DNA of 64,000 bases, taken from assembly GCF_001194135.2 (NCBI RefSeq), contig NC_068992.1:2619078-2683077 (forward strand). The letters run 5' to 3'. The DNA is from Octopus bimaculoides. Taxonomy: Eukaryota. Shown one piece after another: positions 3,028-64,000 of this stretch (positions are counted from its first letter, which is position 1; every line of letters starts with the position of its first letter). The notes beneath the pieces are model-generated. The model made no database searches. It saw nothing but the letters and a program-made list of their open reading frames with translations, and was not told the DNA's origin. The translations under genes and the position numbers were made by a program.

Positions 3028-3669
3028 TATGTGAGGGAGCTTATCAAATGTGTCTTTAAGATGATAGGATATGATTTCAATATTTGACAGCTATTTCTAG
3101 CATGTTGAGTGATTACACAGTCTTTTACATTGGTTCATGCCCACAGGGTCCTGCTTCTGAGTGTAGGAAAATTCTTTTTAGCACATATTTTCTGTCCTTT
3201 ATTTTACATATGTATAATAATGAATGCAGCTATTAATTATATGACTTTTAAGCCTAAATCCACTCGTTAAATACAAGCCTTGATTAATAGCATTTAATGC
3301 TTATTATGACAATTAGTTGATTAAGTAATTATGGGAATTCTTACTCTGCATTCTGTCACATACACAGATTCATGTACATGCCTCATACAATGGCTGATAT
3401 GGAAGCAGAGCTGTTATTCACACAAAGATTCTGTGTGAGTGTGTGTATATATGTGTGTTTTGGATATGTGTGAGTATATGCATTCATTTCATGTATGCGT
3501 GTGCTCTTCTATGAGTATAGTTGTGTATGTGAATATGGATGTGTGTGTGTGTGTGTAATTGTATAAGAATACCAGTGTGTGAGGATTATATTTACTTCTT
3601 TGGTGGAGTTTTCACAATTTAGATTTTCTAAACACAAATGTACAAAAGCTGGCATATACTTATATACAA

Positions 3670-3917
3670 GCACAGGAGTGGCTGTGTGGTAAGTAGCTTG
3701 CTTACCAACCACATGGTTTCGGATTCAGTCCCACTGCATTGCATCTTTGGCAAGTGTCTTCTTCTATAGCCTTGGGCTGACCAAAGCCTTGTGAGTGGAT
3801 TTAGTAGATGGAAACTGAAAGAAGCACATCGTATGTGTGTGTGTGCCTGTTTGTCCCCACCAACATTGCTTGACAACCAATAATGGTGTGTTTATGTCCC
3901 CGTTTGTTCGACTAAAG
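3670..3917 (+). mobile_element. tRNA-derived SINE family B (5' part)
   Basis: Head GGAGTGGCTGTGTGGTAAG..GGATTCAGTCCC and body GACCAAAGCCTTGTGAGTGGATTT..GGAAACTGAAAGAAG. Homologous to 31259, 42650, 53643 and 59063. Confidence 0.85.
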
Positions 3918-3927
3918 ATGAAATACA

Positions 3928-4073
3928 GGTACTAATCATTTTTGCCAGGTGAGTGAACTGAAGCAATGTGGAATGAAGTGTCTTGCTCAAGGACACAACA
4001 CACCCCCAGTAATTGAACTCCTGACCTTACGATCATAAGCTAAATACCCATAATCACTAAGCCACACATCTTC
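3928..4073 (-). mobile_element. tRNA-derived SINE (family D-like, partial)
   Basis: Shares GAGTGAACTG..AAGTGTCTTGCTCAAG with 10056-10392 and 46575-46791. Confidence 0.65.
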
Positions 4074-4300
4074 ACTACAAAGGTTCAAGGATTAATGACA
4101 AAGTATAGAAACCTTGGTACAGTTCTGTATTTAAGAGATGAGGAATTATGCACATTATTTACATTATTTACATTTGATGGATATTTGTCCTCATCTTGTT
4201 TATTGTTAACAAAACATTTCGGCTGATATACCCTCTAGCCTTCATCAGGTGTCTTGGGGTAACTTCGAACCTGGGTTCTCATTCCTAAGGTATTTTTCAA

Positions 4301-4335
<35 letters not shown>

Positions 4336-4338
<3 letters not shown>

Positions 4339-4409
4339 TCACTGCCTGGAATCGAACTTGGAATCTTGGGGTTAGTAGCCCACACTCTTAACCACTACGC
4401 CATATGCCC
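4336..4409 (-). promoter_or_regulatory. tRNA-like Pol III internal promoter module inside the PLE 3' repeat
   Basis: Minus strand GGGCATATGGCGTAGTGGTTAAGAGTGTGGGCTACTAACCCCAAGATTCCAAGTTCGATTCCAGGCAGTGACC. A-box TGGCGTAGTGG, B-box GTTCGATTC, anticodon-like loop CT-ACT-AA. Confidence 0.75.
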
Positions 4410-4438
4410 ATGGGCAGTTATGGAGTGAATTTTAGGGC

Positions 4439-4579
4439 TTATAAATATGATATTTTCGTATCCTTTCTTAATACCAGTTTCCATATGCTGTTCATATCTG
4501 CACTTGGTCTGCTTAGGAGGTTGTTGTGTCCTAGCATATATTCTGCTTCTTTTAGCTTTCATATTTTCCAGTGGTGTTC
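4439..4579 (-). pseudogene. Penelope-like GIY-YIG endonuclease C-terminal fragment (47 codons, one internal TGA probably from CGA)
   Basis: Matches by eye the pattern E..W..RK.KEA..I......NR..G..L..IW..LL of PLE endonucleases. Confidence 0.65.
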
Positions 4580-4709
4580 AGGTTCGAAATTTCCCCAAGA
4601 CGCCTGATGAAGGCTGGAGGGTATATCAGCTGAAGCGTTGTGTTAACAACAAACAAGATGAGGACAAATATCCGTCAAATGTAAATAATGTAAATAATGT
4701 AAATAATGT
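4579..4709 (+). mobile_element. inverted partial PLE terminal repeat at the 5' truncation point (mutated hammerhead 4599-4644)
   Basis: Reverse complement of about 4145-4272. Core reads CTGATGA..CAGCT GAAG, a GAAA to GAAG mutation. Confidence 0.85.
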
Positions 4710-5768
4710 GTAGAAACCTTGTTGTCATATTTGTCAGAGTCAATTTTACCTTTGAGGTAAATGCCAGAAAAAAAACTGGAAAAATTATGCAAAAAAAAAA
4801 ATAAGAGATGAAAATAAGGAAAATTAACAGTAGCAGAAAAAAGAACACTAGACACCAGATTCCAGAGAAGCACCCACCAAAACTCTGAAGATGGCAAGTG
4901 TAATAGTTTTATGACCAGTATCAGAAATAGATGAGAAAACATCTCATCACTTAACAGCTCCAACCTATAGCACCACATTTTCATTGTGTGACAACAAATA
5001 AATAATAATTACAAATGGAAACTAAGAAGAAGTTAGTGAAAATATGAAAGAAAACATCAAACAAAAGCTGAACATAAAACGAAATAACTGAAAGAAGAGA
5101 AATTTTTGTAAATGACAATGAAATCTGCCCTCAGGAAATAAAGAAGGAAATGGAAACCAAGAAGATGAACCAAGAGTTTCTTTGAAAATCAAACAAAAAA
5201 GTTAATAGACAAATTTACACATCTGTGGTGCCACAGACTTTCTGAAGAAGTTAGAATGACATTAAAACAGTAAAGTTCAGAATGTACAACAAATAAGAAT
5301 AGTTTATTAGTAAAAGGAAAATAAAGACATTACACCAAACTTAAAAGAGATTACCCTCAAGTTGCTGATGATTTTTGGAGGGTGAGGCAGGGGGGTGTTG
5401 ACATCAAATGACTTTTAAAATGCTTGTTGGTGCATTCTGTTGCACTCAAACACAGTTTGAGAAATGATTAAGAGAATGGGGTTGTGAAGGTGGAGTATAT
5501 TGTAATCAGTAATGTTTCATGTTTTATTTTCTTCAATTATATTTTTGGGTTTTTTATTATTGTGTTTTTTTAATTTCTTTCTTTCCATGCATATATATGT
5601 AAATATGTATACATGTGTGTGTGTGAATATGTATGCACATATATATATATGTATATGTGTGCACATATATATGTGCATGTGTCTATTTAATATTCTCATT
5701 CCATCTTTCCATATACTGTAAGCCTCTCAACCACCCCTTTGTACTTTTCACACTACACAATTTCTCTT

Positions 5769-5969
5769 GTTCTGTATTTTTGAAATAAGGAATTCTGTAC
5801 ATTATTTACATTATTTATATTGGACAGAACGGATATTTGTCCTCATCTTGTTTGTTGTTAATACAACATTTCAGCTGATTTTCTCTCCGGTGTCTTCATC
5901 AGGTGGCCTGGTAGAATTTTGAACCTAACCCTGGGTTCTCGTTCTTAAGGTATTTTTTTGCTGATGTTG

Positions 5970-6013
<44 letters not shown>

Positions 6014-6073
6014 GAAGGCACTGCCTGGAATTAAACTCACAATCTTGGGGTTAGTAGTCCATGGTCTTAACCA
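5769..6073 (-). mobile_element. PLE terminal-repeat unit (tRNA-like module plus degenerate hammerhead), left arm of a foldback
   Basis: Homologous to 4120-4409. Confidence 0.8.
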
Positions 6074-6074
6074 A

Positions 6075-6358
6075 GAGCATATAGCATAATGGTTAAAAGT
6101 GCTGGCTACTAACCCCAAGATTGCGAGTTCAATTCCAGGCAGTGTCTTGAATAAATAATAATAATAATAACAATAATAGTAACATTAGCAAAAAAATATC
6201 TTAGGAATGAGAACCCAGTGTTGGGTTCAAAATTCTACCAGGACACCTGAAGGAGGCTAGAGGTTATATCAGCCAAAACCTTGTGTTAACAACAAACAAG
6301 ATGAGGACAAATATCCGTCAATTGTAAATAATGTAAATAAGGTACAATTTCTCATCTT
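6075..6358 (+). mobile_element. PLE terminal-repeat unit, right arm of a foldback (core mutated: CTGAAGG, AAAAC)
   Basis: Head GAGCATATAGCATAATGGTTAA..GAGTTCAATTCCAGGCAGTG, then (AAT)n, then tail CAAGATGAGGACAAATATCCGTCA. Confidence 0.85.
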
Positions 6359-6384
6359 TTTCGTTCCTTTATTGTGTGAATGGT

Positions 6385-8260
6385 CTCATATCTCATGCTT
6401 CAATTATTATTGGTACTATCTTTACTTTCATACCTCATATGTTGCTTATTCCAGTTTCAAGATCTTTAGATTTCCACAGTGAATCCTCATTCTTCAGGCA
6501 GTGTTTAAGTCAACCAGGGATTGATCCATCTTTCAGAGACACACATTTTTATTTCAATTCTTGATTATTATATCTGGACAGTTTGATTTGATTTTCTGGT
6601 CAATATTGACAGAATTGTCTCACTTGATTGTTTCCAAGTCACTGGATGTATTCTGATTGCTACATGCTTATACCATTTATCTTTTTATGCATTGAAGTGT
6701 TGGCATATTGCTCAATAAAAATAACTGCAAACCAAATCATGTCTGTGAATTTACTCGGATTTGGCAAGAATTTTTCCTATTGTTTTGTCCTGATGTATAA
6801 ATCTTTTTCTTCAGTGTGGTTACTTTCCAGTTCCTACTTCATTTCCAAATACTCCTTTATAATATAGATGCAAAGAAGAGTTCATTTATTTCTTTTTCAC
6901 AATTCTTTATTACACTTATTAGTCTATCTCTTGTTGCTTCTAAGTAATTTTCTACTCCAACTATTGTTATTTTGTAGTAGTTTTCTGTTTCTATTAGACC
7001 CTCTTTGTGTGTACCCTTTGAATATCATTATGGAGTAGTGGCTACACAACACTGCTAATATTTTCTTGGTGCTTTTGGCTATATTTTTCAATTCCCTTAA
7101 CTTACAGTTTATTATATGCTTGAAGTCTAGCACTGAGTTTTAATATTAGCTTAAAGTCATGTATTGATTTTTTAATATTAGCCTTATTCTTCTGTAACAT
7201 TTTTGGATTTGGTCTGCAAGATTCTTTATGTGAGTTCGTGTGTTGAAGCATATTTTGTTGTGTCTGGGAAGAGTCAATCTCTTTTAGTGCCTTATTGTTT
7301 AACACACTCATCGGTAAAGTTTCCACTCATTTACTTATTTATTTTTCTAAAATTTCCATTGCGTCTTGCATTAATCATTGAAAAGGTTGCAAGACGCAAC
7401 AAAAAGTAATGAGTGGAAACTTTACCGGTGAGTGTGTTAAATTATAAGGCACTTTTTTTTAATTATCTTATTTCTCTGTTCATATTTCATCAGTTCTATC
7501 TATTCCTAGAAGCTGCATGGATGATTCTGGTCTAATTCTCTGATTTTTCATTCTCTGTCAAATTTGATAATCTCAGTTTTAGTTAATTTGCTTCTTTTTG
7601 TATCATTTCTACATTTGTCTGATACTCATTTTCAGTTTGTTTCCCAACTGAGTATTAATCCCCGTAAATATCACTAAGCCATCCACAGAGATAATGTGGT
7701 TTATCGTTTGTCCTCAGAATCTATTATCATCTGTGGCTTCATTCCAAAACTTGTTAAAGTAGTCAGAATATAAGCAGCTGGGTACATGATGAACCCCATT
7801 GGAAAATGAAATTTCTCTCCTTATAGCAACAAGGCTGGCTTTAATTATTTTCTACTTGCTTCGTTGTGAGATGATTGTTTCCTATTTTGACATGACATGG
7901 CAGTTGCATTCTGCTGGTATTACAGCTGTTTTGTCTATATCAGTATCTCCAGAATCGGCAATTGTGCTTTACGCTAATAAATCTTTGCCACACAAACATT
8001 AGTTTTCCTCTTTTTGCTGTCTTCTTTAATATCTCACCTCACCAGTAATTGGTGCTTCATACAGCCTTGCATCTCTTTCCAGCATTATTTCTACTCTTTT
8101 CCCATTAAGTTATCAATCTTCAGCTAAGTAACCAATATCTTGTTGTATTGTAGATTAAAGATATTAGTGTCTGGGTCTAACTTAATATTCTTAGTATTAC
8201 TGAATTTGCTTCTTTTCCATGTTTGACACATTTGTCAAATCCTAATCTTATTATGGTGTT
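6385..8260 (-). mobile_element. heavily degraded R4/Dong-like (RLE) non-LTR retrotransposon, RT to endonuclease, probably composite
   Basis: Minus-strand remnants: QGCMKHQLLVR*DIKEDSKKRKTNVCVAKIY (RT), INHIISVDGLVIF (cf. INHLLFMDDLKLY), DKCRNDTKRSKLTKTEIIKFDRE, KIKSNCPDIIIK and KDLETGISNI*GMKVKIVPIII (RLE). A second thumb-region piece lies at about 8130-8260. Confidence 0.75.
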
Positions 8261-8845: not shown

Positions 8846-8946
8846 AGTTCTATGTTTAAGACATGAGGAATTATGTACATTATTTACATTTGACAGATAT
8901 TTGTCCTCATCTTGTTTGTTGTTAGCACAACATTTCGGCTGATATA
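8846..8946 (-). mobile_element. PLE terminal-repeat 3' fragment (half hammerhead)
   Basis: Minus strand TATATCAGCCGAAATGTTGTGCTAAC..GAGGACAAATATC..AATTCCTCAT. Confidence 0.85.
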
Positions 8947-10722: not shown

Positions 10723-10920
10723 CAGTTCTATATTTAAGAGATGAGGAATTATGTACTTCATTTACATTAGATGGATATTTGTCCTTATCTTGTTTGTTGC
10801 TAACACAATGTTTCAGCTGATATACCCTCCAGCCTTCATCAGGTGTCTTGGGGAAATTTCGTACCTGTATTCTCTTTCCTAAGGTATTTTTTGATATAAT
10901 TATAATTATTATTATTATTA
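10723..10920 (-). mobile_element. PLE terminal-repeat unit without tRNA module (hammerhead 10802-10847, core intact, CpG-decayed stems)
   Basis: GACAC CTGATGA AGGCTG GAGGGTATAT CAGCT GAAAC ATT GTGTT. Confidence 0.88.
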
Positions 10921-11419
10921 TTAATAATAATAATAACTGAAGAAGGTTTACGTAATGGAACCATTTCCTATTATATATCACGCACACCTGAAACACATGT
11001 ATTAAATTATTTCAAAAGTCACTATTTTGGTTTGACTTTATTTTTACAACTAATACAACTCAATGCCAGTACAAACTAATCAGTCTTGACTCTACTTATG
11101 GTGATACTCAAACAACAATTTGAAGTAGTTTGTTATATATGACTCGAGTCGAAAATTTTGGTATTGGGCACCACTTCTTAGCATATCACAAAATATATAT
11201 TTATATGTGATATATATATATATTTATATATGTGTGTATTTTTATATAAAATATATATTAGCGTGTAATATATTTTATACTTATTTTTAGACATTTCTTC
11301 TTCTGGTTCATCAGATACATTGACTGCAAAAGATTGCTGCATATATTCTTAACTCTATGCCAAATAATAATAATAATAACTGGTTCTGTTTTCTTATTAT
11401 ATTATTTCATTTAATGTCA

Positions 11420-17808: not shown

Positions 17809-18786
17809 CATTATTTATTTGTTTGTTTAATGATATTTTAATATTTGAGAAACAATCTTTTTTTAAAACATAAAACTAAAATGTAAAAATAAAAGAAGAA
17901 AAGTTTCACAGAATATTAAGGAAAACAACAGCAACATCATCAAGAACAACAACAACACTGTTGTCATACAATAGAAAATATCGATAGGCTTTGATGGTTG
18001 TTTTTCTCTCTTGTTTTCAATGTTTCCTCTGTTCAAATCTCATTTGATCTTAAATAAAGCTAACAAAAACACAACAAACACTGCACATTTATTAATATGA
18101 CAAGTTTTTCTTTTCTTTTTTTTTGGTGTTTATCAACTTATGTGGACAGAGTGTTTAGTTATGGAAGAATCAACCAATCACTTCTGATGTTTTACATTGA
18201 TGCTGGCTGTTGTTGTTTTTCTTTCACACTGATTGTCCAACATCAATTAGCTTGTTATTAATATGCTATTTATTTGCAATGAACATACGCTAAATTAAAC
18301 CATTATCAAAACTGATTTGTGTGCGTTTATGGATTGCGTGCCCGTGTCTGTGTGTGTATATGTGCGTGTGTGCATGTGTATGTGTATATATGTGTATGTA
18401 TATCTCTGTATATGAGTCTGTGTGTTTCTCTGTGGACATGTGTAGTATTACAGTGTAGGTGATAATTTTGGTGTAGAGCAACTCTGCAGGTAGTGGGTTC
18501 AATTCAGAGGGGTACTTTAATTCTACTTTCACTGTTAACAACTTAACTACTAGCTTTGAAAACAGTTTCACCATTACAACTTCCATTTATATATGCATGT
18601 CTAAATGTTTGTGTGTGCATGAGCATTAGGCTGGGAAATGCAAGTGAACCCAAAGGACAAACTTGTCTTCCCAGAATAGATAGCAGTAGCATCACTCCAA
18701 CCAGGCAAACTGACACCAATTAATTCCATCTTAAATGATACCGAATTACAGATGGGTGTCCTGAGCTATTGAGTGCTGTGTGCCTT

Positions 18787-18927
18787 TACATTATTTACAT
18801 TTGGAAGTTATTTGTCCTCATCTTGTCTGCTGTTAACACAACATTTCGGCTGATATACTCTTCAGCCTTCATCAGGTGTCTTGAAAAAATTTTGAACCTG
18901 AGTTCTCGTTCCTAAGGTATTTTTTCA

Positions 18928-18962
<35 letters not shown>

Positions 18963-19059
18963 TCACTGCCTGGAATCGAACTCGGAATCTTGGGGTTAGT
19001 AGTCCATGCTCTTAGCCACTACACCATATGTACATAATTCCTCATCTCTTAAATACAGA
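18787..19059 (-). mobile_element. PLE unit (tRNA module, (AAT)n, hammerhead) with a short inverted terminal copy at 19028-19059
   Basis: Colinear with 4120-4409. Followed on plus strand by TACATAATTCCTCATCTCTTAAATACAGA, the element's own 3' terminus in opposite orientation. Confidence 0.88.
18835..18880 (-). ncRNA. minimal type I hammerhead ribozyme, near intact
   Basis: GACAC CTGATGA A GGCTG AAGAGTATAT CAGCC GAAAT GTT GTGTT. All invariant core bases are present, with a U-G wobble in stem III. Confidence 0.75.
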
Positions 19060-21990: not shown

Positions 21991-24602
21991 TTCCCCTAAT
22001 CTTATCGTCCATTATTTGTTTCCAATTCATGTTGACTCCTCAGATAGGTCTAAAGGTCGAATTCAACTGCTACAGTCTCACTTGTGTGTGTGTGTGTGTG
22101 TGTGGTGAGAGAGTTTAGGAATGTCAAAGATGATTTCCTTCATCTCCTTCCTTTTAACAAACCAAATGTTCTTTCTTGGAAGGTGCTATGGTGTTATGTT
22201 AGCCTGAGGTGTTGCTGCTCGCTAGAAGTGTCATAAGATTTTCTTTGCACACCTCTCTCTCGTATTCAAATTTTGAAAGGCAATCTCTGGCTGAACATAA
22301 TTTGTTATAAAGTTTTCTCCTAAACTGAAATCAATTGCTGCATAGCTCAGAACAAAGTAAAAATGAAAAAAAAAAAGAAAAAAAAGTCATAGACTTAGAG
22401 AACTTTTTAGTCTAAGCTTCCTTATTTCTTTGACTATATTCATATCAATCTTTTTGTCAATTTTTTTATTCCTTTCAATATTTTATGTTGAACTTAGAAG
22501 TGAACCAATTCCTACACATACAAACACATATACAAATACACAGAACATACATTACAATATTGTAAGGTAGGTACTAACTCTACAATTACAACAAATGTGG
22601 TTCACAATTTGGTTTTTTGTCAAAATTCTCAGTATTTTATTTCGGTTACACAAAACCTTAGAAAAAATTTTTTAATTAAAAAAAAATAGAAAACCTTTAT
22701 GTTTTCCACTTTGCCTACTCTTGAAGTCAATTAAGATAACTTGTAATTAACATTTGTGAAAATAATTAGCCAACCAGAAAATACTCATTTGTTGGTCAAA
22801 GGCTTATCAGTTTTCAATACAGAATCAACTCAAGTCCTTTCACTTCCTTGTTTTTGATTCCATTGAGTGTAATTATACAAACATCCCCCTAAGATAAATA
22901 AGTCAATTTATATCACCTCTTTATATCATTCTTCCTTACAAACTATGCCTTCTGAATTCCCCCCCCCACACACACACACACACACAACCAAAAATTTTAT
23001 TTTATGTGTGTATATTTGATCTGATACAAAAAGCAATGCTTTTAAGATAAAACTTTTCTTATACACTGCAAACCAAAAATAGAATTCAAAAGAACTTGTC
23101 TCTTTCTTTCTCTGGCTATTTCTATATCTAATGGAACTGTTCTTGTCACAAGACTCCTGAATGTGTCTCTAACTCACTTAACAAAGAATACAAACCATTT
23201 CAATGCATTATTACAAAAGACTTAAATTTTTTAATGGGTCAAATGTTTGTCATCCCCAAATTCTCTACTTAATATTAACATCAACATTAGACAAAATTAT
23301 TTGTTTTGCATTTCAATTCTTTTCTTTTTTTTTCTTAGTTTATTTTCTATTTGTTATTAATTCCTTCTGTTTTCTTTTTATTTTATTCTCTTTTGTTGTT
23401 TTGCTTCTTTTTCAGTCAAGAATTTTCTGACACTTGTTTTAGAAATTTTTCAAACCTTATACCATTGTACACACAATGCCCTTTGCATGCCTGAATGACC
23501 GAACGATAATGTGTTCCTAATTCTAAGATACAACAGTACAAAGTATTGGGATGGTGTTGTTAGTCTCAAAGGGGGATAATTCTTTCAAGCAAGTTATATT
23601 TTTAATACCAGAATGAGCTTACAAAGAAATACAATTTGTTACGATTGATCTTTTGCTTGTGGTCAGTCTGTCAATGCTGGAAAGCCTATACAAATGAAAT
23701 GGTTCTAATGTAGAAGAAAATCTGAAAATTCTAAATGTTATCCACCATTAAAAGAAAATGAATGCAATAGCTGTCATTTTGATATACACATCACACAACA
23801 TTTACTGGCAAACTAAAACCTTATCAAAAACTGAATATGTTTGCTTTAATGAAATAAACTTACTGAAAACACGATATTTCCTTGTATAGCATGGATATTC
23901 TGTAGCCCTGTCGTTAACAGTTACTACGAGGTCATTATGGAATATGTACTGCTTAAATCATCAATTCAATTTTTGCTTTAATTATTATTGACTTAATAAT
24001 GCTTCTTCAATAAGAAAACTTTATGAAGGATACACCTAGCGTATAAAAGTAACGTATTGTTGTAAATTTGCCACAGAGTAACCAGATTAGTCTACTTCCA
24101 ATAGTGTTATTTTTTTATTAATGGTTTTTGGTTGCTATGCTGGCAAAGAATTTATAGTTTATTTATACATAATAACTGCAGCCAATATAACCAAACCTGA
24201 GAGAATTATACAAATTGGTGGTGGTGGTGGTAGTGGGGGTGAAATGGTGTGGGATATTGATGGCAGATTAAATATGAGCAGGTTCCTTCACCTAAAACCA
24301 TTGTGTGTGTGTGTGTGTGTTATGTAAGAGAATTATCTCTATTAAGTCATCTCTCATAAATATTATTATAGTCATGCCACCACTACAGTCTTGTTTTGTT
24401 GGTTTCAGTTTAATTGTTTCTGAAATACATCCACCATAATATGTGAGGTTCTCAAAACTTAACCCCATCTTCCATAACTTTTGTTTCCATCAATTCAATG
24501 AAATGGAGCATTCATCATTTATAGAATAACCCCACTGTTTACAGTCGTGTGTTACACCTCCTCATTGTACTTATTTATTAGTTGGATATTCCAAGTCATT
24601 GT

Positions 24603-24850
24603 GAAGGTGGATGGCTCAGTGCTTAGAGTATTAGGCTCACAGCCATGAGGTAGTGAATTCGATCTCCAGACTGTGCTGTGTGTTTTGTTCTTGAGCAAGA
24701 CACTTTATTTCACATTGCTGCAGTTCACTCAGTTGTACAAATGATTTGTAGAAAGGCTGATACAGCTAGTGCCAAGCTGTATCAGCCTTTGCCTTTCTCT
24801 TGGATTACATCGGTAGTGTAGAGAGGGAAGACTTTTATGCATGAGTGACT
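24603..24850 (+). mobile_element. SINE family D (5' portion)
   Basis: GGATGGCTCAGTGCTTAGAG..GAATTCGATCTCC..TTCTTGAGCAAGACACTTTATTTCAC. Confidence 0.8.
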
Positions 24851-31258: not shown

Positions 31259-31630
31259 GGCACAGGCGTGTCTGAGTGGTAAGAAGTTTATTTTTCAATC
31301 ACATGGTTCTGGGTTCAGTCCCACTGTATGTCTTCTACGACAGCTTCAAGCCAACCAAAGCCTTGTAAGTGGAATTAGTGAATGGAAACCGAAAGAAGCC
31401 TGTCATATACATACGTATATGTGTGTGTGTGTGTTTGTCCTCCCACCATCCCTTCATAACCGGTGTTGGTGTATTTATGTCCCTGTAACTTAGTGGCTCA
31501 GCCAAAGAGATCGATAGAATAAGCACCAGGCTTACTAAGAAAGTATTTGGCTTGACTCATTCAACTAAAAACTCTTCAGAGCAGTGCCCCAGCAGGGCCA
31601 CAGTCTAATGATGGAAAGAAGTAAAAGATG
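31259..31630 (+). mobile_element. SINE family B, full length, with CR1-type tail
   Basis: Head, conserved body, internal (TA/GT)n, and tail CAGTGCCCCAGCAGGGCCACAGTCTAATG. Confidence 0.88.
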
Positions 31631-33825: not shown

Positions 33826-33952
33826 TATTATTCAGTTCACTGCTTGGAATCGAACTCAGAATCTTGGGGTTAGTAGTCCATGCTCTTAACCACTACGCCA
33901 TATGCCCGTGGGCTAATGACCCCAAGATTCTGAGTTCGATTCCAGGCAGTGA

Positions 33953-33993
<41 letters not shown>

Positions 33994-34140
33994 TCGAAAA
34001 ATACCTTAGGAATGAGAACCCAGGTTCGAAATTTCCCCAAGACACCTGATGAAGGCTGGAGGGTATATCAGCTGAAACATTGTGTTAACAAGAAACAAGA
34101 TGAGGACAAATATCCGTCAAATGTAAATAATGTCAATAAT
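33826..34140 (+). mobile_element. PLE unit (33909-34140, hammerhead 34041-34086) preceded by an inverted tRNA-like module (33826-33907)
   Basis: GACAC CTGATGA AGGCTG GAGGGTATAT CAGCT GAAAC ATT GTGTT. The inversion junction GCCCGTGGGC is equivalent to GCCCATGGGC at 4406-4415. Confidence 0.88.
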
Positions 34141-34184
34141 ATACTAATTTATTTGTATGCCTTGTTTCTTACACACAACTCTTA

Positions 34185-35009: not shown

Positions 35010-35232
35010 AAGGTGGCAAGTCGGCAGAATCATTTGCACCCTGGGAGAAATGCTTAGTGGAATTTCATTTCTCAGTACATCCTGAGTTCAAATTCCGCTG
35101 AGGTTGACTTTACTTTTCTCCCTTTCAGAGTCAATAAATTAAGTAGTAGTGTTAACAACAAGCAAGATGAGGACAAATATTCATCAAATGTAAATAATGT
35201 AAATAATTTCTCATCTCTTAAATATAGAACTG
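35010..35232 (+). mobile_element. SINE C 5' part (35010-35145) fused to PLE 3' tail (35149-35232)
   Basis: GAGTTCAAATTCCGCTGAGGTTGACTTT..AAATTAAGTA, then GTGTTAACAACA..GAGGACAAATATT..TCTCATCTCTTAAATATAGAACTG. Confidence 0.8.
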
Positions 35233-39007: not shown

Positions 39008-39328
39008 GGAGGTGCATGGCTCAGTGGTTAGAGCATCAGGTTCACAATCACGAGATAGTGAGTTCGATTTCTGGACCAGGCTGTGTGTTGTGTTCTTGAA
39101 CAAGACACTTTACTTCAAGTTGCTCCACTTCACTCTGTAGAAATGAATTGTGACATCACTGGTGCCGAGCTGTATCAGTCTTTGCCTTTTCCTTGGACAA
39201 CATCAGTGGCAGGGAGAGAGGAGGCTGGCATGCCAGGGCAACCGCTGGTCTTCCATAAATAACCTTGGCCAGAGAGGAACTTTCTAGCTGAAATCCCATG
39301 GTCATTCATGACCGAAGGGGGTCTTTAC
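39008..39328 (+). mobile_element. SINE family D, near full length
   Basis: GGAGGTGCATGGCTCAGTGGTTAGAGC..GAGTTCGATTTC..GACCGAAGGGGGTCTTTAC. Confidence 0.88.
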
Positions 39329-46574: not shown

Positions 46575-46791
46575 CTCTCCACAACCACTGATGTTCTCCA
46601 AGGGAAAGGCAAAGGGGCCGATACAGCTTGGCACGAGTGACGTCACAACTCATTTCTACAGCTGAGTTAACTGGAGCAATGTGAAATAAAGTGTCTTGCT
46701 CAAGAACACAGCACACAGCCCAGTCTGGGAATCGAACTCACTACCTCATGATTGTGAGCCTGACGCTCTTACCACTGAACCATGCTCCTTC
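46575..46791 (-). mobile_element. SINE family D (5' portion)
   Basis: Nearly identical in places to 10180-10392. Confidence 0.85.
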
Positions 46792-57330: not shown

Positions 57331-57825
57331 GGTGAGCTAGCAGAATCGTTAGCACGCTGGGCAGAATGCTGAGTGGCATTTTGTCTGTCTTTACGTTCTG
57401 AGTTCAAATTCTGCTCAGGTCAGCTTTGTTTTTTCATCCTTTCAGTACCAATAAATTAAGCTTCAGCTGAGTATTGGGGGCCGATGTAATCGAATTTGCC
57501 CTTCCCCTGAAATATCAGGCCTTGTGCCTTTTGTAGAAAGGATTATTATTATTATCATTATTATTACTTTTATTATTATTAAGGCGGTGAGCTGGCAGAA
57601 ACATTAGCATGCCGGTTAAAATGCTTTGCTGTATTTTGCCTATCGTCTTTATGTATTTCTTCTGTCTTTATGTTCTGAGTTCAAATTCCACCGAGGTCGA
57701 CTTTGTCTTTCATCGTTTTGGGGTCAATAAATTAAGTACCATTCAAACACTGGGGTCGATGTAATCAACTGGTCCCCTCCCCACAAATCTGTAGCAATGT
57801 ACCTCCAGTAGAAAGGATTTATTAT
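57328..57825 (+). mobile_element. two tandem SINE family C copies (57328-57545, 57582-57825), each ending in (ATT)n
   Basis: AAGG(T/CG)GAGCT(A/G)GCAGAA..GAGTTCAAATTC..GGGG(C/T)CGATGTAATC..GTAGAAAGGATT(ATT)n. Confidence 0.88.
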
Positions 57826-57836
57826 TATTATTGTTG

Positions 57837-57886
<50 letters not shown>

Positions 57887-57914
57887 ATTATTATCATTAT
57901 TAATATTATTGTCA

Positions 57915-57950
<36 letters not shown>

Positions 57951-57952
<2 letters not shown>

Positions 57953-58121
57953 AACAACATCGAAAATATTTTAGGAATGAGAACCCAGGTTCAAAATTCC
58001 TCCAGGACACCTGATGAAGGCTGGAGGGTATATCAGCCGAAACATCGTTAACAAGATGAGGACAAATATCCGTCAAATGTAAATAATGTACATAATTCCT
58101 CATCTCGCAAATATAGAACTG
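57951..58121 (+). mobile_element. PLE terminal-repeat unit without tRNA module (hammerhead core intact, stem I 3' strand deleted)
   Basis: GACAC CTGATGA AGGCTG GAGGGTATAT CAGCC GAAAC ATC GTTAAC, ending AAATATAGAACTG. Confidence 0.88.
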
Positions 58122-59062: not shown

Positions 59063-59230
59063 TGCAGGCGCGGTTGTGTGGTAAGATGCTTGCTTCCTAA
59101 CCACATGGTTCCAGGTTCAGTCCCACTGTGTGGCACCTTGCGCAAGTGTCTTCTACTATAGCCTTGAGCCGACCAAAGCCTTGTGAGTGGATTTGGTAGA
59201 TGGAAACTGAAAGAAGCTTGTTGTGTGTGT

Positions 59231-61979: not shown

Positions 61980-62025
61980 TACATTATTTACATTTGATGG
62001 ATATTTGTCCTCATCTTGTTTGTTG
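61980..62025 (-). mobile_element. short PLE tail fragment
   Basis: TACATTATTTACATTTGATGGATATTTGTCCTCATCTTGTTTGTTG. Confidence 0.8.
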
Positions 62026-63618: not shown

Positions 63619-63773
63619 CTTTAAACCAGGCACTCAAACCATTCCCTAAAGGAGTACAGTCTACTCATTGACACAGGCAAGTCAGAAGAGAGAATTAAAA
63701 TGGAAAATTTATAATTTTCACTGAAATGTCAATGATGGAAGTCAAATGAAATATTTCTAAACAAGTGTGGTAG

Positions 63774-63937
63774 GTACATTATTTACATTATTTACACTAT
63801 TTACATTTGATGGATATTTGTCCTCATCTTGTTTGTTGTTAACACAACGTTTCAGCTGATGTACTCTCCAGCCTTCATCAGGTGTCCTGGGGAAATTTTT
63901 AACCTGGATTCTCATTCCTAAGTATTTTTGCGATGTT
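63774..63937 (-). mobile_element. PLE terminal-repeat unit without tRNA module
   Basis: Colinear with 10723-10897. Three AATGTAAAT-type 9-mers. Confidence 0.88.
63841..63886 (-). ncRNA. minimal type I hammerhead ribozyme, best-preserved copy
   Basis: GACAC CTGATGA A GGCTG GAGAGTACAT CAGCT GAAAC GTT GTGTT. Intact core, palindromic AACGTT stem III, GUU cleavage triplet, 5-bp stem I. Confidence 0.8.
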
Positions 63938-64000
63938 GTAATGTCAGTGTATCAATTTATACAGTTAATATATATATATATATATAAATATATATATATA

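Follow-up and report, generated by a model that had tools for sequence, protein, structure and literature searches.

Does a tRNA-like segment that lies between the end of a retrotransposon reading frame and a hammerhead ribozyme belong to the retrotransposon and, if it does, what might it do there? The question is raised by an insertion at positions 4117-4707 of a stretch of 64,000 nucleotides of the Octopus bimaculoides genome (RefSeq assembly GCF_001194135.2, contig NC_068992.1, positions 2,619,078 to 2,683,077 of the forward strand), which is referred to here as the window. The insertion is one retrotransposition product of a 5'-truncated octopus Penelope-like element (PLE) of the canonical type, in which a GIY-YIG endonuclease forms the C terminus of the protein encoded by the open reading frame (ORF). 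Comparison with long copies from other loci indicates that the tRNA-derived module has long been a built-in component of the 3' untranslated region (UTR) of this PLE lineage and is not a secondary insertion. On balance, we favor a role for the module as an internal RNA polymerase III (Pol III) promoter, whose transcript, carrying the region where the PLE reverse transcriptase (RT) starts, would be mobilized in trans, so that a short interspersed element (SINE) would be nested within its own parent.

Organization of the Insertion

The region inspected was 3600-5300, and all feature coordinates of the insertion refer to the minus strand. The whole structure is enclosed by a target-site duplication of 14 bp, CAAGGTTTCTAYAC (4721-4708 and 4116-4103), and is therefore the outcome of one insertion event. 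Within it lie, in order, an inverted 5'-truncated arm, the last ~45 codons of the endonuclease, a stop codon within the TATA-like sequence TTTATAA, the 75-nt tRNA-derived module, (AAT)n, a minimal dimer-type hammerhead, a 3' hairpin with AATGTAAAT repeats, and an optional tail of ~30 nt (Table I). A first-pass annotation, made by reading the letters alone, had listed an endonuclease-like C terminus, a tRNA-like module, a hammerhead, terminal repeats, and an inverted partial repeat at the 5' truncation, and each of these was found again in its place. The inverted repeat is the arm at 4579-4707, which self-comparison of the window aligned in opposite orientation with 4145-4273 at 90.7% identity. 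The Tandem Repeats Finder program (TRF) places a tandem repeat at 4678-4709, overlapping the arm, and in the hammerhead of the arm A15.1 is replaced by G.

The ORF tail consists of codons 4558-4442 and a TAA stop at 4441-4439, with an in-frame TGA at 4561-4559. The first-pass annotation had taken these codons for the end of a PLE ORF, and the protein comparisons bear this out. A HMMER search of 1.84e9 proteins with the 39-residue peptide returned 15 matches at E ≤ 1e-3; a hypothetical protein of Octopus vulgaris (P0002) is 84% identical to the window peptide 4558-4442 (E 1e-5) and extends upstream through ...CSCGRLYKGETCRP..VEEHRKA..., also read as CSCGRLYKGETCRPFKIKVEEHRKA..., which is the GIY-YIG core. 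A second protein, P0016, has ~89% identity to the window peptide and the same C terminus, ...SIWEPVLKKDRKMSGL, and both proteins contain CSCG..Y.(G/D)ET..R....EH. The sequence with the top HMMER score, P0001, is a 789-residue repeat protein unrelated to PLEs and was set aside as spurious. Another relative, P0022, aligned with the curated endonuclease of Poseidon_Ac over 155 residues up to the C terminus (E 6e-24; reference sequence taken from the supplement of PMC11167929). RT fragments are present beside a long copy of a sister subfamily (L006), where positions 4320-4811 are 37% identical to the Poseidon_Ac RT (E 1e-34) and score 31.7 bits on the Pfam model RVT_1, for which the cut-off is 29.6. 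In P0035, RT through endonuclease lie within one ORF of 529 residues, the longest seen. The window copy, being 5'-truncated, has no RT, which is found in its long relatives.

Direct comparison of the window peptide with Poseidon_Ac gave a weak match (E 0.21, shuffle p ~0.09) that is not significant alone, and the link therefore needed the intermediate octopus sequences. No match to Pfam, including its GIY-YIG model, was obtained for four endonuclease fragments at E ≤ 1, except to weak unrelated families, and a Pfam search of three reading frames at the ORF tail returned nothing. A word-indexed protein search with a 45-residue peptide and exact-product look-ups of three window ORFs gave no match, and none of the window ORFs of at least 110 residues is PLE-like. 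Judged by its protein relatives, the window element is a 5'-truncated canonical endonuclease-positive (EN+) PLE.

The Module in Long Copies of Three Subfamilies

Copies outside the window were all reached through protein look-ups, which favor ORF-bearing copies; the sequences include accessions ERZ21867824, ERZ23499442, SRR11869394, and GCA_052426985.1. The window subfamily consists of the window copy, L001, L002, and L009, all with the order ORF stop, linker, tRNA-like module, repeat, and hammerhead. L001, on O. vulgaris chromosome OX597819.1, has an inverted arm with tail and ~100 endonuclease codons with their stop; a linker homologous to window positions 4438-4410 leads on to the tRNA-like head and (AAT)n, and the hammerhead and an end that lacks the tail complete the copy. 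L002 is a metagenome scaffold whose ORF, already open at the first position of the contig, runs to the same stop, with the same linker and head after it, and L009, a Logan contig, has the same order with a decayed ribozyme. Because their 5' truncation points and flanks differ from those of the window copy, these three are independent insertions.

The sister subfamily (L005, L006, and L007) has an endonuclease ~59-65% identical and a longer linker after the stop, with the same TTTATAAGYCCYAAAA motif. Its module has the A box TAGCRTARYGG and the B box GGTTCAATCC and is followed by a spacer of ~110 nt, the hammerhead, and AAGATGARGACA. The third subfamily is represented by L008, in which a (CAG)n-like stretch replaces (AAT)n and two RT-endonuclease ORFs of 449 residues, 3409-4758 on the minus strand and 5001-6350 on the plus strand, lie head-to-head ~240 bp apart. 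Its protein, P0038, stands for 38 near-identical sequences, which suggests that the L008 subfamily is young and possibly active.

The module occupies the same place in every long copy with a readable 3' region; two further loci with related endonuclease ends, L003 and L004, have a broken or different 3' region on contigs of ~600 bp. The first-pass annotation had proposed that the module belongs to the element and had named a one-off SINE insertion as the competing possibility; its recurrence at the same position in L001, L002, L009, L005, L006, and L007, and in decayed form in L008, settles this point in favor of the element. Two DNA patterns specific to the family were also run against collections of metagenome, prokaryote-genome, and viral contigs and matched nothing there.

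The tRNA-derived Module and the TATA-like Box

With TGGCGTAGTGG as its A box and AGTTCGATTCC as its B box, the module has the spacing found in tRNA genes, the two boxes together spanning 55 nt. A pattern for A and B boxes with tRNA spacing matches five sites in the window, four of which belong to the PLE family, compared with 0.005 expected from 200 dinucleotide shuffles. Between subfamilies, the A-box block is 69% identical and the B-box block 67%, as against 20-37% for the other parts of the module, and RNAalifold found no conserved cloverleaf across the subfamilies, the consensus energy being -3.4 kcal/mol. The alignments indicate that it is the sequence of the boxes, and not the fold, that is conserved in the module. 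The head of the module may resemble tRNA-Ser(GCU), a likeness that serves as a lead only.

The linker that follows the stop is 29 nt long (4438-4410, minus strand). The TAA of the TATA-like box doubles as the ORF stop codon in the window subfamily. TTTATAA occurs in L001 (~4375-4381), L002 (484-490), L005 (~1674-1680), L006 (~5663-5669), and L007 (~6601-6607), and L008 has TTTAATA in its place (~6360-6366); the box lies 30-36 nt upstream of module +1 in all long copies and is missing from the short copies that start at +1. Five independent 5' ends fall at module +1 (±3 nt), namely those at 6077, 19030, and 33907 and both arms of a second L001 element. The consensus unit of the window subfamily, 287 nt in length, contains no TTTT; at position 1.1 of the hammerhead in the window copy, G has become T, which makes a TTTT at 4214-4211.

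A second B-box-like motif, GGTTCGAAATT, lies at window positions 4271-4261 (minus strand), ~20 nt upstream of the hammerhead, and is kept in three subfamilies; motifs of this type are found in L006 (~5885-5895) and L008 (~6593-6605), and these two copies have an additional GAGTTCGA immediately before helix I.

The Hammerhead Ribozyme

The hammerhead of the window copy comprises stem I (4253-4249/4212-4208), the core CTGATGA (4248-4242), stem II (4240-4236/4225-4221), and GAA (4220-4218), with cleavage predicted between 4213 and 4212. It reads GACAC/CTGATGA/A/GGCTA..CAGCC/GAA/A-TG-T/T and, past the predicted cleavage site, TTGTT. The consensus, with CpG sites restored, is GACAC CUGAUGA A GGCUG-loop-CAGCC GAA A-CG-U U followed by GUGUU. 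Its helix I has 5 bp, an A stands unpaired before helix II, G10.1 pairs with C11.1, 15.2-16.2 is palindromic, and helix III is reduced to A15.1-U16.1 around the palindrome ACGU. PLE-repeat hammerheads of the minimal, dimer-dependent kind have the same traits (Cervera and de la Pena, PMC4209133). The consensus has the core C3-A9, G12-A14, A15.1-U16.1, and H17 together with helices I and II. A strict descriptor of the minimal hammerhead fits the family consensus and has no match in 200 dinucleotide-shuffled versions of the window.

The hammerhead of the window copy has decayed at three sites: there are substitutions at 10.5, within the palindrome ACGU, and at 1.1, the last of which breaks the 1.1-2.1 pair. 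The best preserved hammerhead in the window, at 63778-63937, has a G.U at 10.1-11.1 as its sole defect, and a perfect copy with complete core and stems is present in O. vulgaris (L001, 5975-5801). When 12 hammerheads from the three subfamilies are aligned, 84% of cells pair, compared with 15-55% when the partners are slid, and stem II contains one U-A to C-G compensation across subfamilies. The Rfam hammerhead models gave no match at the gathering threshold or at E ≤ 10 in 2 kb or in the best copy (63770-63945), as expected for a stem III of 1 bp. The hammerhead described in the first-pass annotation is thus a minimal ribozyme of the PLE type at the place given for it, but it is complete in the family consensus only and is decayed in this copy.

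3' End and Short Copies

The AATGTAAAT repeats lead to a terminus, ...AAATACAGAACTG, that ends at 4120 and is shared by six other copies. The 9-bp hairpin AGAUGAGGA/UCCUCAUCU (z = -2.3) encloses these repeats, and tail-less ends fall within its loop; in L007 the hairpin is preserved by a compensatory change (AGATGAAG/CTTCATCT, given also as AGAUGAAG/CUUCAUCU). There are two classes of 3' end, six at body positions 150-164, within the AATGTAAAT repeats, and eight at 186-188 (...AGAACTG), and the tail missing from the copy at 19 kb is found inverted at its 5' end (19028-19059). PLEs have an optional tail of 30-40 bp at one end (PMC8557442), which for Poseidon_Ac was traced by Frangieh et al. to two internal RT start sites and priming on both DNA strands (PMC11167929). 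The two end classes and the inverted tail of the 19-kb copy match the optional PLE tail and the two Poseidon_Ac start sites. An inverted piece is present at the 5' end in all four module-bearing loci of the window and, outside it, in L001 (3969-4048) and as the inverted ORF pair of L008.

The window contains 13 copies of the ribozyme-bearing body and six of the tRNA-like head, and short, ORF-less copies of the ~290-bp unit outnumber long copies by 12 to 1. Positions 4410-4578 are carried by no other copy in the window, and several copies begin at the tRNA-like head. Short non-coding copies that run from the head and share the PLE 3' end are found at 6077-6360, 19030-18785, and 33907-33833 and in L001 at 6116-5801. 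TRF and self-BLAST revealed no head-to-tail tandem arrays of the hammerhead unit in the 64 kb; there are inverted pairs and dispersed copies instead.

The slot after the module is occupied by a microsatellite (window 4303-4334, 10901-10940, and 57800-57952; L008 6440-6545), which is (AAT)n in the window subfamily and a (CAG)n-like sequence in L008. Where the module is missing, copies start in a palindrome of (TTA)n/(TAA)n or in a long (ATT)n. In Poseidon_Ac, the endonuclease cleaves at ATT, just downstream of where its ORF ends (PMC11167929), and the (AAT)n slot may therefore be a self-target or an internal priming site.

Table I. Features of the insertion at 4117-4707 and other copies of the family in the window
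Feature	Positions	Strand	Basis
Target-site duplication, copy 1, CAAGGTTTCTACAC on minus strand	4708-4721		Sequence reading
Inverted 5'-truncated arm (consensus body positions 35-163), with second decayed hammerhead; ends in AATGTAAAT repeats without tail	4579-4707	+	
Last 39-47 codons of PLE ORF (C terminus of GIY-YIG endonuclease), ...HHWKI*KLKEAEYMLGHNNLLSRPSADMNSIWKLVLRKDTKISYL; stop at 4441-4439	4439-4578	-	
Linker, including conserved TATA-like TTTATAA (4445-4439; -36 to -30 from module +1)	4410-4445	-	
tRNA-derived module, 75 nt; A box 4402-4392, B box 4358-4348	4335-4409	-	
(AAT) microsatellite, 10.7 copies, between tRNA-like module and ribozyme region	4303-4334	-	TRF
Minimal type I hammerhead, decayed in window copy	4208-4253	-	Compared with architecture in PMC4209133
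3' hairpin AGATGAGGA (4196-4188)/TCCTCATCT (4144-4136), enclosing AATGTAAAT repeats	4136-4196	-	
Optional PLE tail CATAATTCCTCATCTCTTAAATACAGAACTG, in about half of copies	4120-4150	-	Concept from PMC8557442, PMC11167929
Target-site duplication, copy 2, CAAGGTTTCTATAC on minus strand	4103-4116		Sequence reading
Head-to-head dimer of two short copies (5769-6073/6077-6360) joined at 5' ends of tRNA-like modules, junction ~6073-6077	5769-6360		
5'-Truncated copy from body position 78, with tail	8846-8946	-	
Copy truncated in (AAT)n, with (TTA)n/(TAA)n palindromic junction; tail present	10723-10926	-	
Short copy from tRNA-like module, no tail at end (19030-18785); tail (body 158-184) inverted at 5' end, 19028-19059	18785-19059	-	
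Inverted pair: module from +1 (33907-33833, minus) and tail-less copy truncated at module position 28 (33909-34149, plus)	33833-34149		
5'-Truncated copy from body position 93, with tail	35146-35232	+	
Copy without tRNA-like module, long (ATT)n in front; tail present	57927-58121	+	
Short tail-less fragment, body positions 103-148	61980-62025	-	
Tail-less copy, best preserved hammerhead in window	63778-63937	-	

Proposed Role of the Module and Alternatives

In the reading that we favor, the module acts as an internal Pol III promoter within the 3' region of the PLE. As no TTTT (T4) terminator lies between the module and the 3' end in the window subfamily, Pol III would be expected to produce an RNA of ~290 nt from module +1 to the 3' end of the element. 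Such an RNA would retain the 3' hairpin, the repeats, and the tail, which together would constitute the start region of the PLE RT, and could be copied in trans by the PLE enzyme to give the abundant short copies that lack an ORF. Stem III of the hammerhead amounts to no more than the palindrome ACGU, and two copies are needed for folding; short RNAs present as monomers would therefore escape cleavage, which would be confined to multimeric transcripts of the PLE. The upstream TATA-like box is kept only by modules embedded in the PLE, and long copies would for this reason be the better source genes. Taken together, the conservation of the boxes, the five ends at +1, the TATA-like box, the absence of T4, and the excess of short copies tilt the balance toward a Pol III function. 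A larger proposal, which we advance tentatively and hold less firmly than the promoter function itself, is that this is an autonomous PLE lineage with a working Pol III gene, including a TATA-like box, in its 3' UTR or pseudo-long terminal repeat (pLTR), that every long copy would be a SINE master gene, and that the loss of T4 and gain of (AAT)n in one subfamily would have converted a short tRNA-like transcript into the mobile unit of ~290 nt.

A number of observations weigh against a Pol III function. ARAGORN found no tRNA in the window, the module sequences, or the loci, and the Rfam tRNA model gave no match to a 91-nt slice containing the module even at E ≤ 10. All five ends at +1 are located at inverted junctions, and the sample is small (n = 5). 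No copy in the window has a fully intact hammerhead, because two CpGs in CCGAAACGUU have decayed. In the sister subfamily, a terminator-like TTTT is located ~45 nt past the B box (L005, ~1815-1822; L006, ~5822-5830), so that Pol III would stop before the hammerhead there and would give no mobile RNA. The module of L008 is recognizable, with degenerate A and B boxes, and the subfamily nonetheless looks prolific, which would make the promoter dispensable for the PLE itself. The recovered copies are all 5'-truncated, and among them there is no full-length intact ORF, flanking pair of pLTRs, or full-length tandem copy.

Some of these points can be accommodated by supposing that a tRNA or SINE fragment was captured in an ancestral 3' UTR and has persisted as a functionless passenger, the short copies being ordinary 5' truncations. 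The degenerate boxes of the prolific-looking L008 subfamily and the disappearance of the cloverleaf fit this explanation, as do the truncation of many copies at arbitrary points and the heavy 5' truncation for which PLEs are noted (PMC8557442). It is harder to reconcile with box identities of 67-69%, compared with 20-37% for the rest of the module, in subfamilies whose surrounding UTR barely aligns, with the conservation of the TATA-like box at -36 to -30, or with the coincidence of five 5' ends with module +1, where random truncation would not cluster, and we regard a fossil origin as unlikely. The same ends, which correspond to +1 of a mature tRNA, and a module that in every long copy comes immediately behind the stop codon would also suit a mechanism in which RNase P and RNase Z excise the tRNA-like segment from RNA polymerase II transcripts of the PLE, as with mascRNA from MALAT1, and the 3' RNA from +1 is reverse-transcribed. 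However, these enzymes require an acceptor/T-arm fold, and no cloverleaf is predicted or conserved (-3.4 kcal/mol), the ARAGORN and Rfam searches were negative, and conservation resides in the box sequences rather than in pairing; RNA processing appears to us less probable still than a fossil.

The least credible explanation, to which we attach very little weight, is a one-off nesting or chimera, in which a tRNA-headed SINE with a PLE-like tail inserted beside unrelated DNA, or reached it by a template switch, and the 47 codons are a chance reading frame or transduced flanking sequence. The restriction of 4410-4578 to a single copy in the window and the empty Pfam and word-indexed protein searches with the peptide could be read in this way. 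It is refuted by the HMMER search, which found octopus PLE endonuclease fragments; moreover, the same junction of ORF end, linker, and module recurs at the independent loci L001, L002, and L009, and the 14-bp target-site duplication surrounds everything. The HMMER matches and these three external loci likewise rule out an independent tRNA-headed SINE with a PLE-like tail lying beside unrelated DNA.

Comparison with Known Systems

The octopus element shares with canonical EN+ PLEs (Penelope/Poseidon, e.g. Poseidon_Ac of Anolis) an ORF with RT and C-terminal GIY-YIG endonuclease, a minimal dimer-type hammerhead, inverted 5'-truncated arms, an optional tail of ~30 nt, two classes of 3' end, the lack of poly(A), and an AT-rich or ATT-type repeat just past the end of the ORF. 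Unlike any PLE whose description was found, it has, in three subfamilies, an A/B-box module of tRNA origin that separates the ORF stop from the hammerhead. In full-text literature searches, neither a tRNA-derived module in a PLE nor the octopus PLE family of 4117-4707 was found described; the family may already be on record under separate entries for Penelope and SINE.

The closest parallels to the short unit are found among non-autonomous elements. The Sm-alpha and Sj-alpha repeats of Schistosoma are short, non-coding, dispersed, multicopy units in which a Pol III promoter is followed by a hammerhead (PMC6765202), and the octopus unit resembles them in this layout, with a putative promoter and a hammerhead, the comparison being one of architecture only. 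Sm-alpha is known solely as a non-autonomous, often tandem unit whose hammerhead, of the canonical type I, works in cis or in trans, whereas in octopus the combination occurs inside the 3' region of an autonomous element, the ribozyme is of the minimal PLE type, and the window copies are inverted and not tandem. Animal retrozymes of the non-LTR (LTR, long terminal repeat) type are elements with a hammerhead and no autonomy, proposed to derive from PLE pLTRs and to use the machinery of the PLE (bioRxiv 10.64898/2026.07.22.740005; PMC7229834); they form tandem arrays that give circular RNAs, with no Pol III or tRNA-like promoter described, whereas the octopus unit forms no direct tandem array in the window. 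In the terminal-repeat retrotransposons in miniature (TRIMs) Cassandra, Helenus, and Ajax, a Pol III-type sequence derived from 5S RNA or tRNA is located inside the LTR (PMC10886601), but they belong to the LTR class, are non-autonomous, and occur in plants, fungi, and oyster, whereas the octopus module belongs to the PLE class and is present in ORF-bearing copies. With the classical pairs of tRNA-derived SINEs and long interspersed elements (LINEs), the octopus system has three things in common: the head is of tRNA type, the 3' end is the same as the partner's, and mobilization is in trans, which in octopus is proposed. In the classical pairs, however, the promoter head is foreign to the LINE, whereas in octopus the head belongs to the partner, and the short unit is collinear with the long form along its entire length.

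Other Repeats in the Window

A separate tRNA-derived SINE family, with the core ...GTGTTCTTGAGCAAGACACTT...CACATTGCTCCAG, is present at 46795-46640 (minus), 24600-24749, 10392-10247 (minus), 39010-39154, and 4085-3880 (minus); one copy lies directly downstream of the 4117-4707 insertion, and the copy at 46782 fits the A/B-box pattern. A further family of dispersed repeats of ~150 bp, probably a SINE, adjoins the insertion (3680-3835, 59072-59217, 43034-42888 on the minus strand, and 31272-31399). The window includes 2136 N bases in gaps flanked by CA, TA, and AT-rich microsatellites (e.g. at 14.5-15.0, 29.1-29.4, 43.1-43.9, and 59.2-59.7 kb), which are typical of a draft short-read assembly, and repeat structures near the gaps may therefore be incomplete.

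Implications

The usual explanation for SINEs is that a Pol III promoter has by chance become fused to a LINE 3' end, and an origin in PLE repeats is only suspected for ribozyme repeats of the Sm-alpha type and for animal retrozymes. In the octopus family, a promoter-like module, a hammerhead, and an RT start region are collinear in ORF-bearing PLE copies, with matching short copies alongside, which suggests a way in which short SINE-like parasites could originate within their own parent. If the Pol III activity is real, the family would offer a concrete and testable path from an autonomous PLE to a parasite resembling a SINE or retrozyme and a natural system for studying the template requirements of the PLE reverse transcriptase. 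It would also account for part of the repeat structure of octopus genomes, in which composite inverted insertions hamper assembly and repeat annotation. Should long copies act as master genes, the family would represent the birth of a SINE, or of a ribozyme SINE of the Sm-alpha type, within its parent, and would add to the SINE load of octopus genomes.

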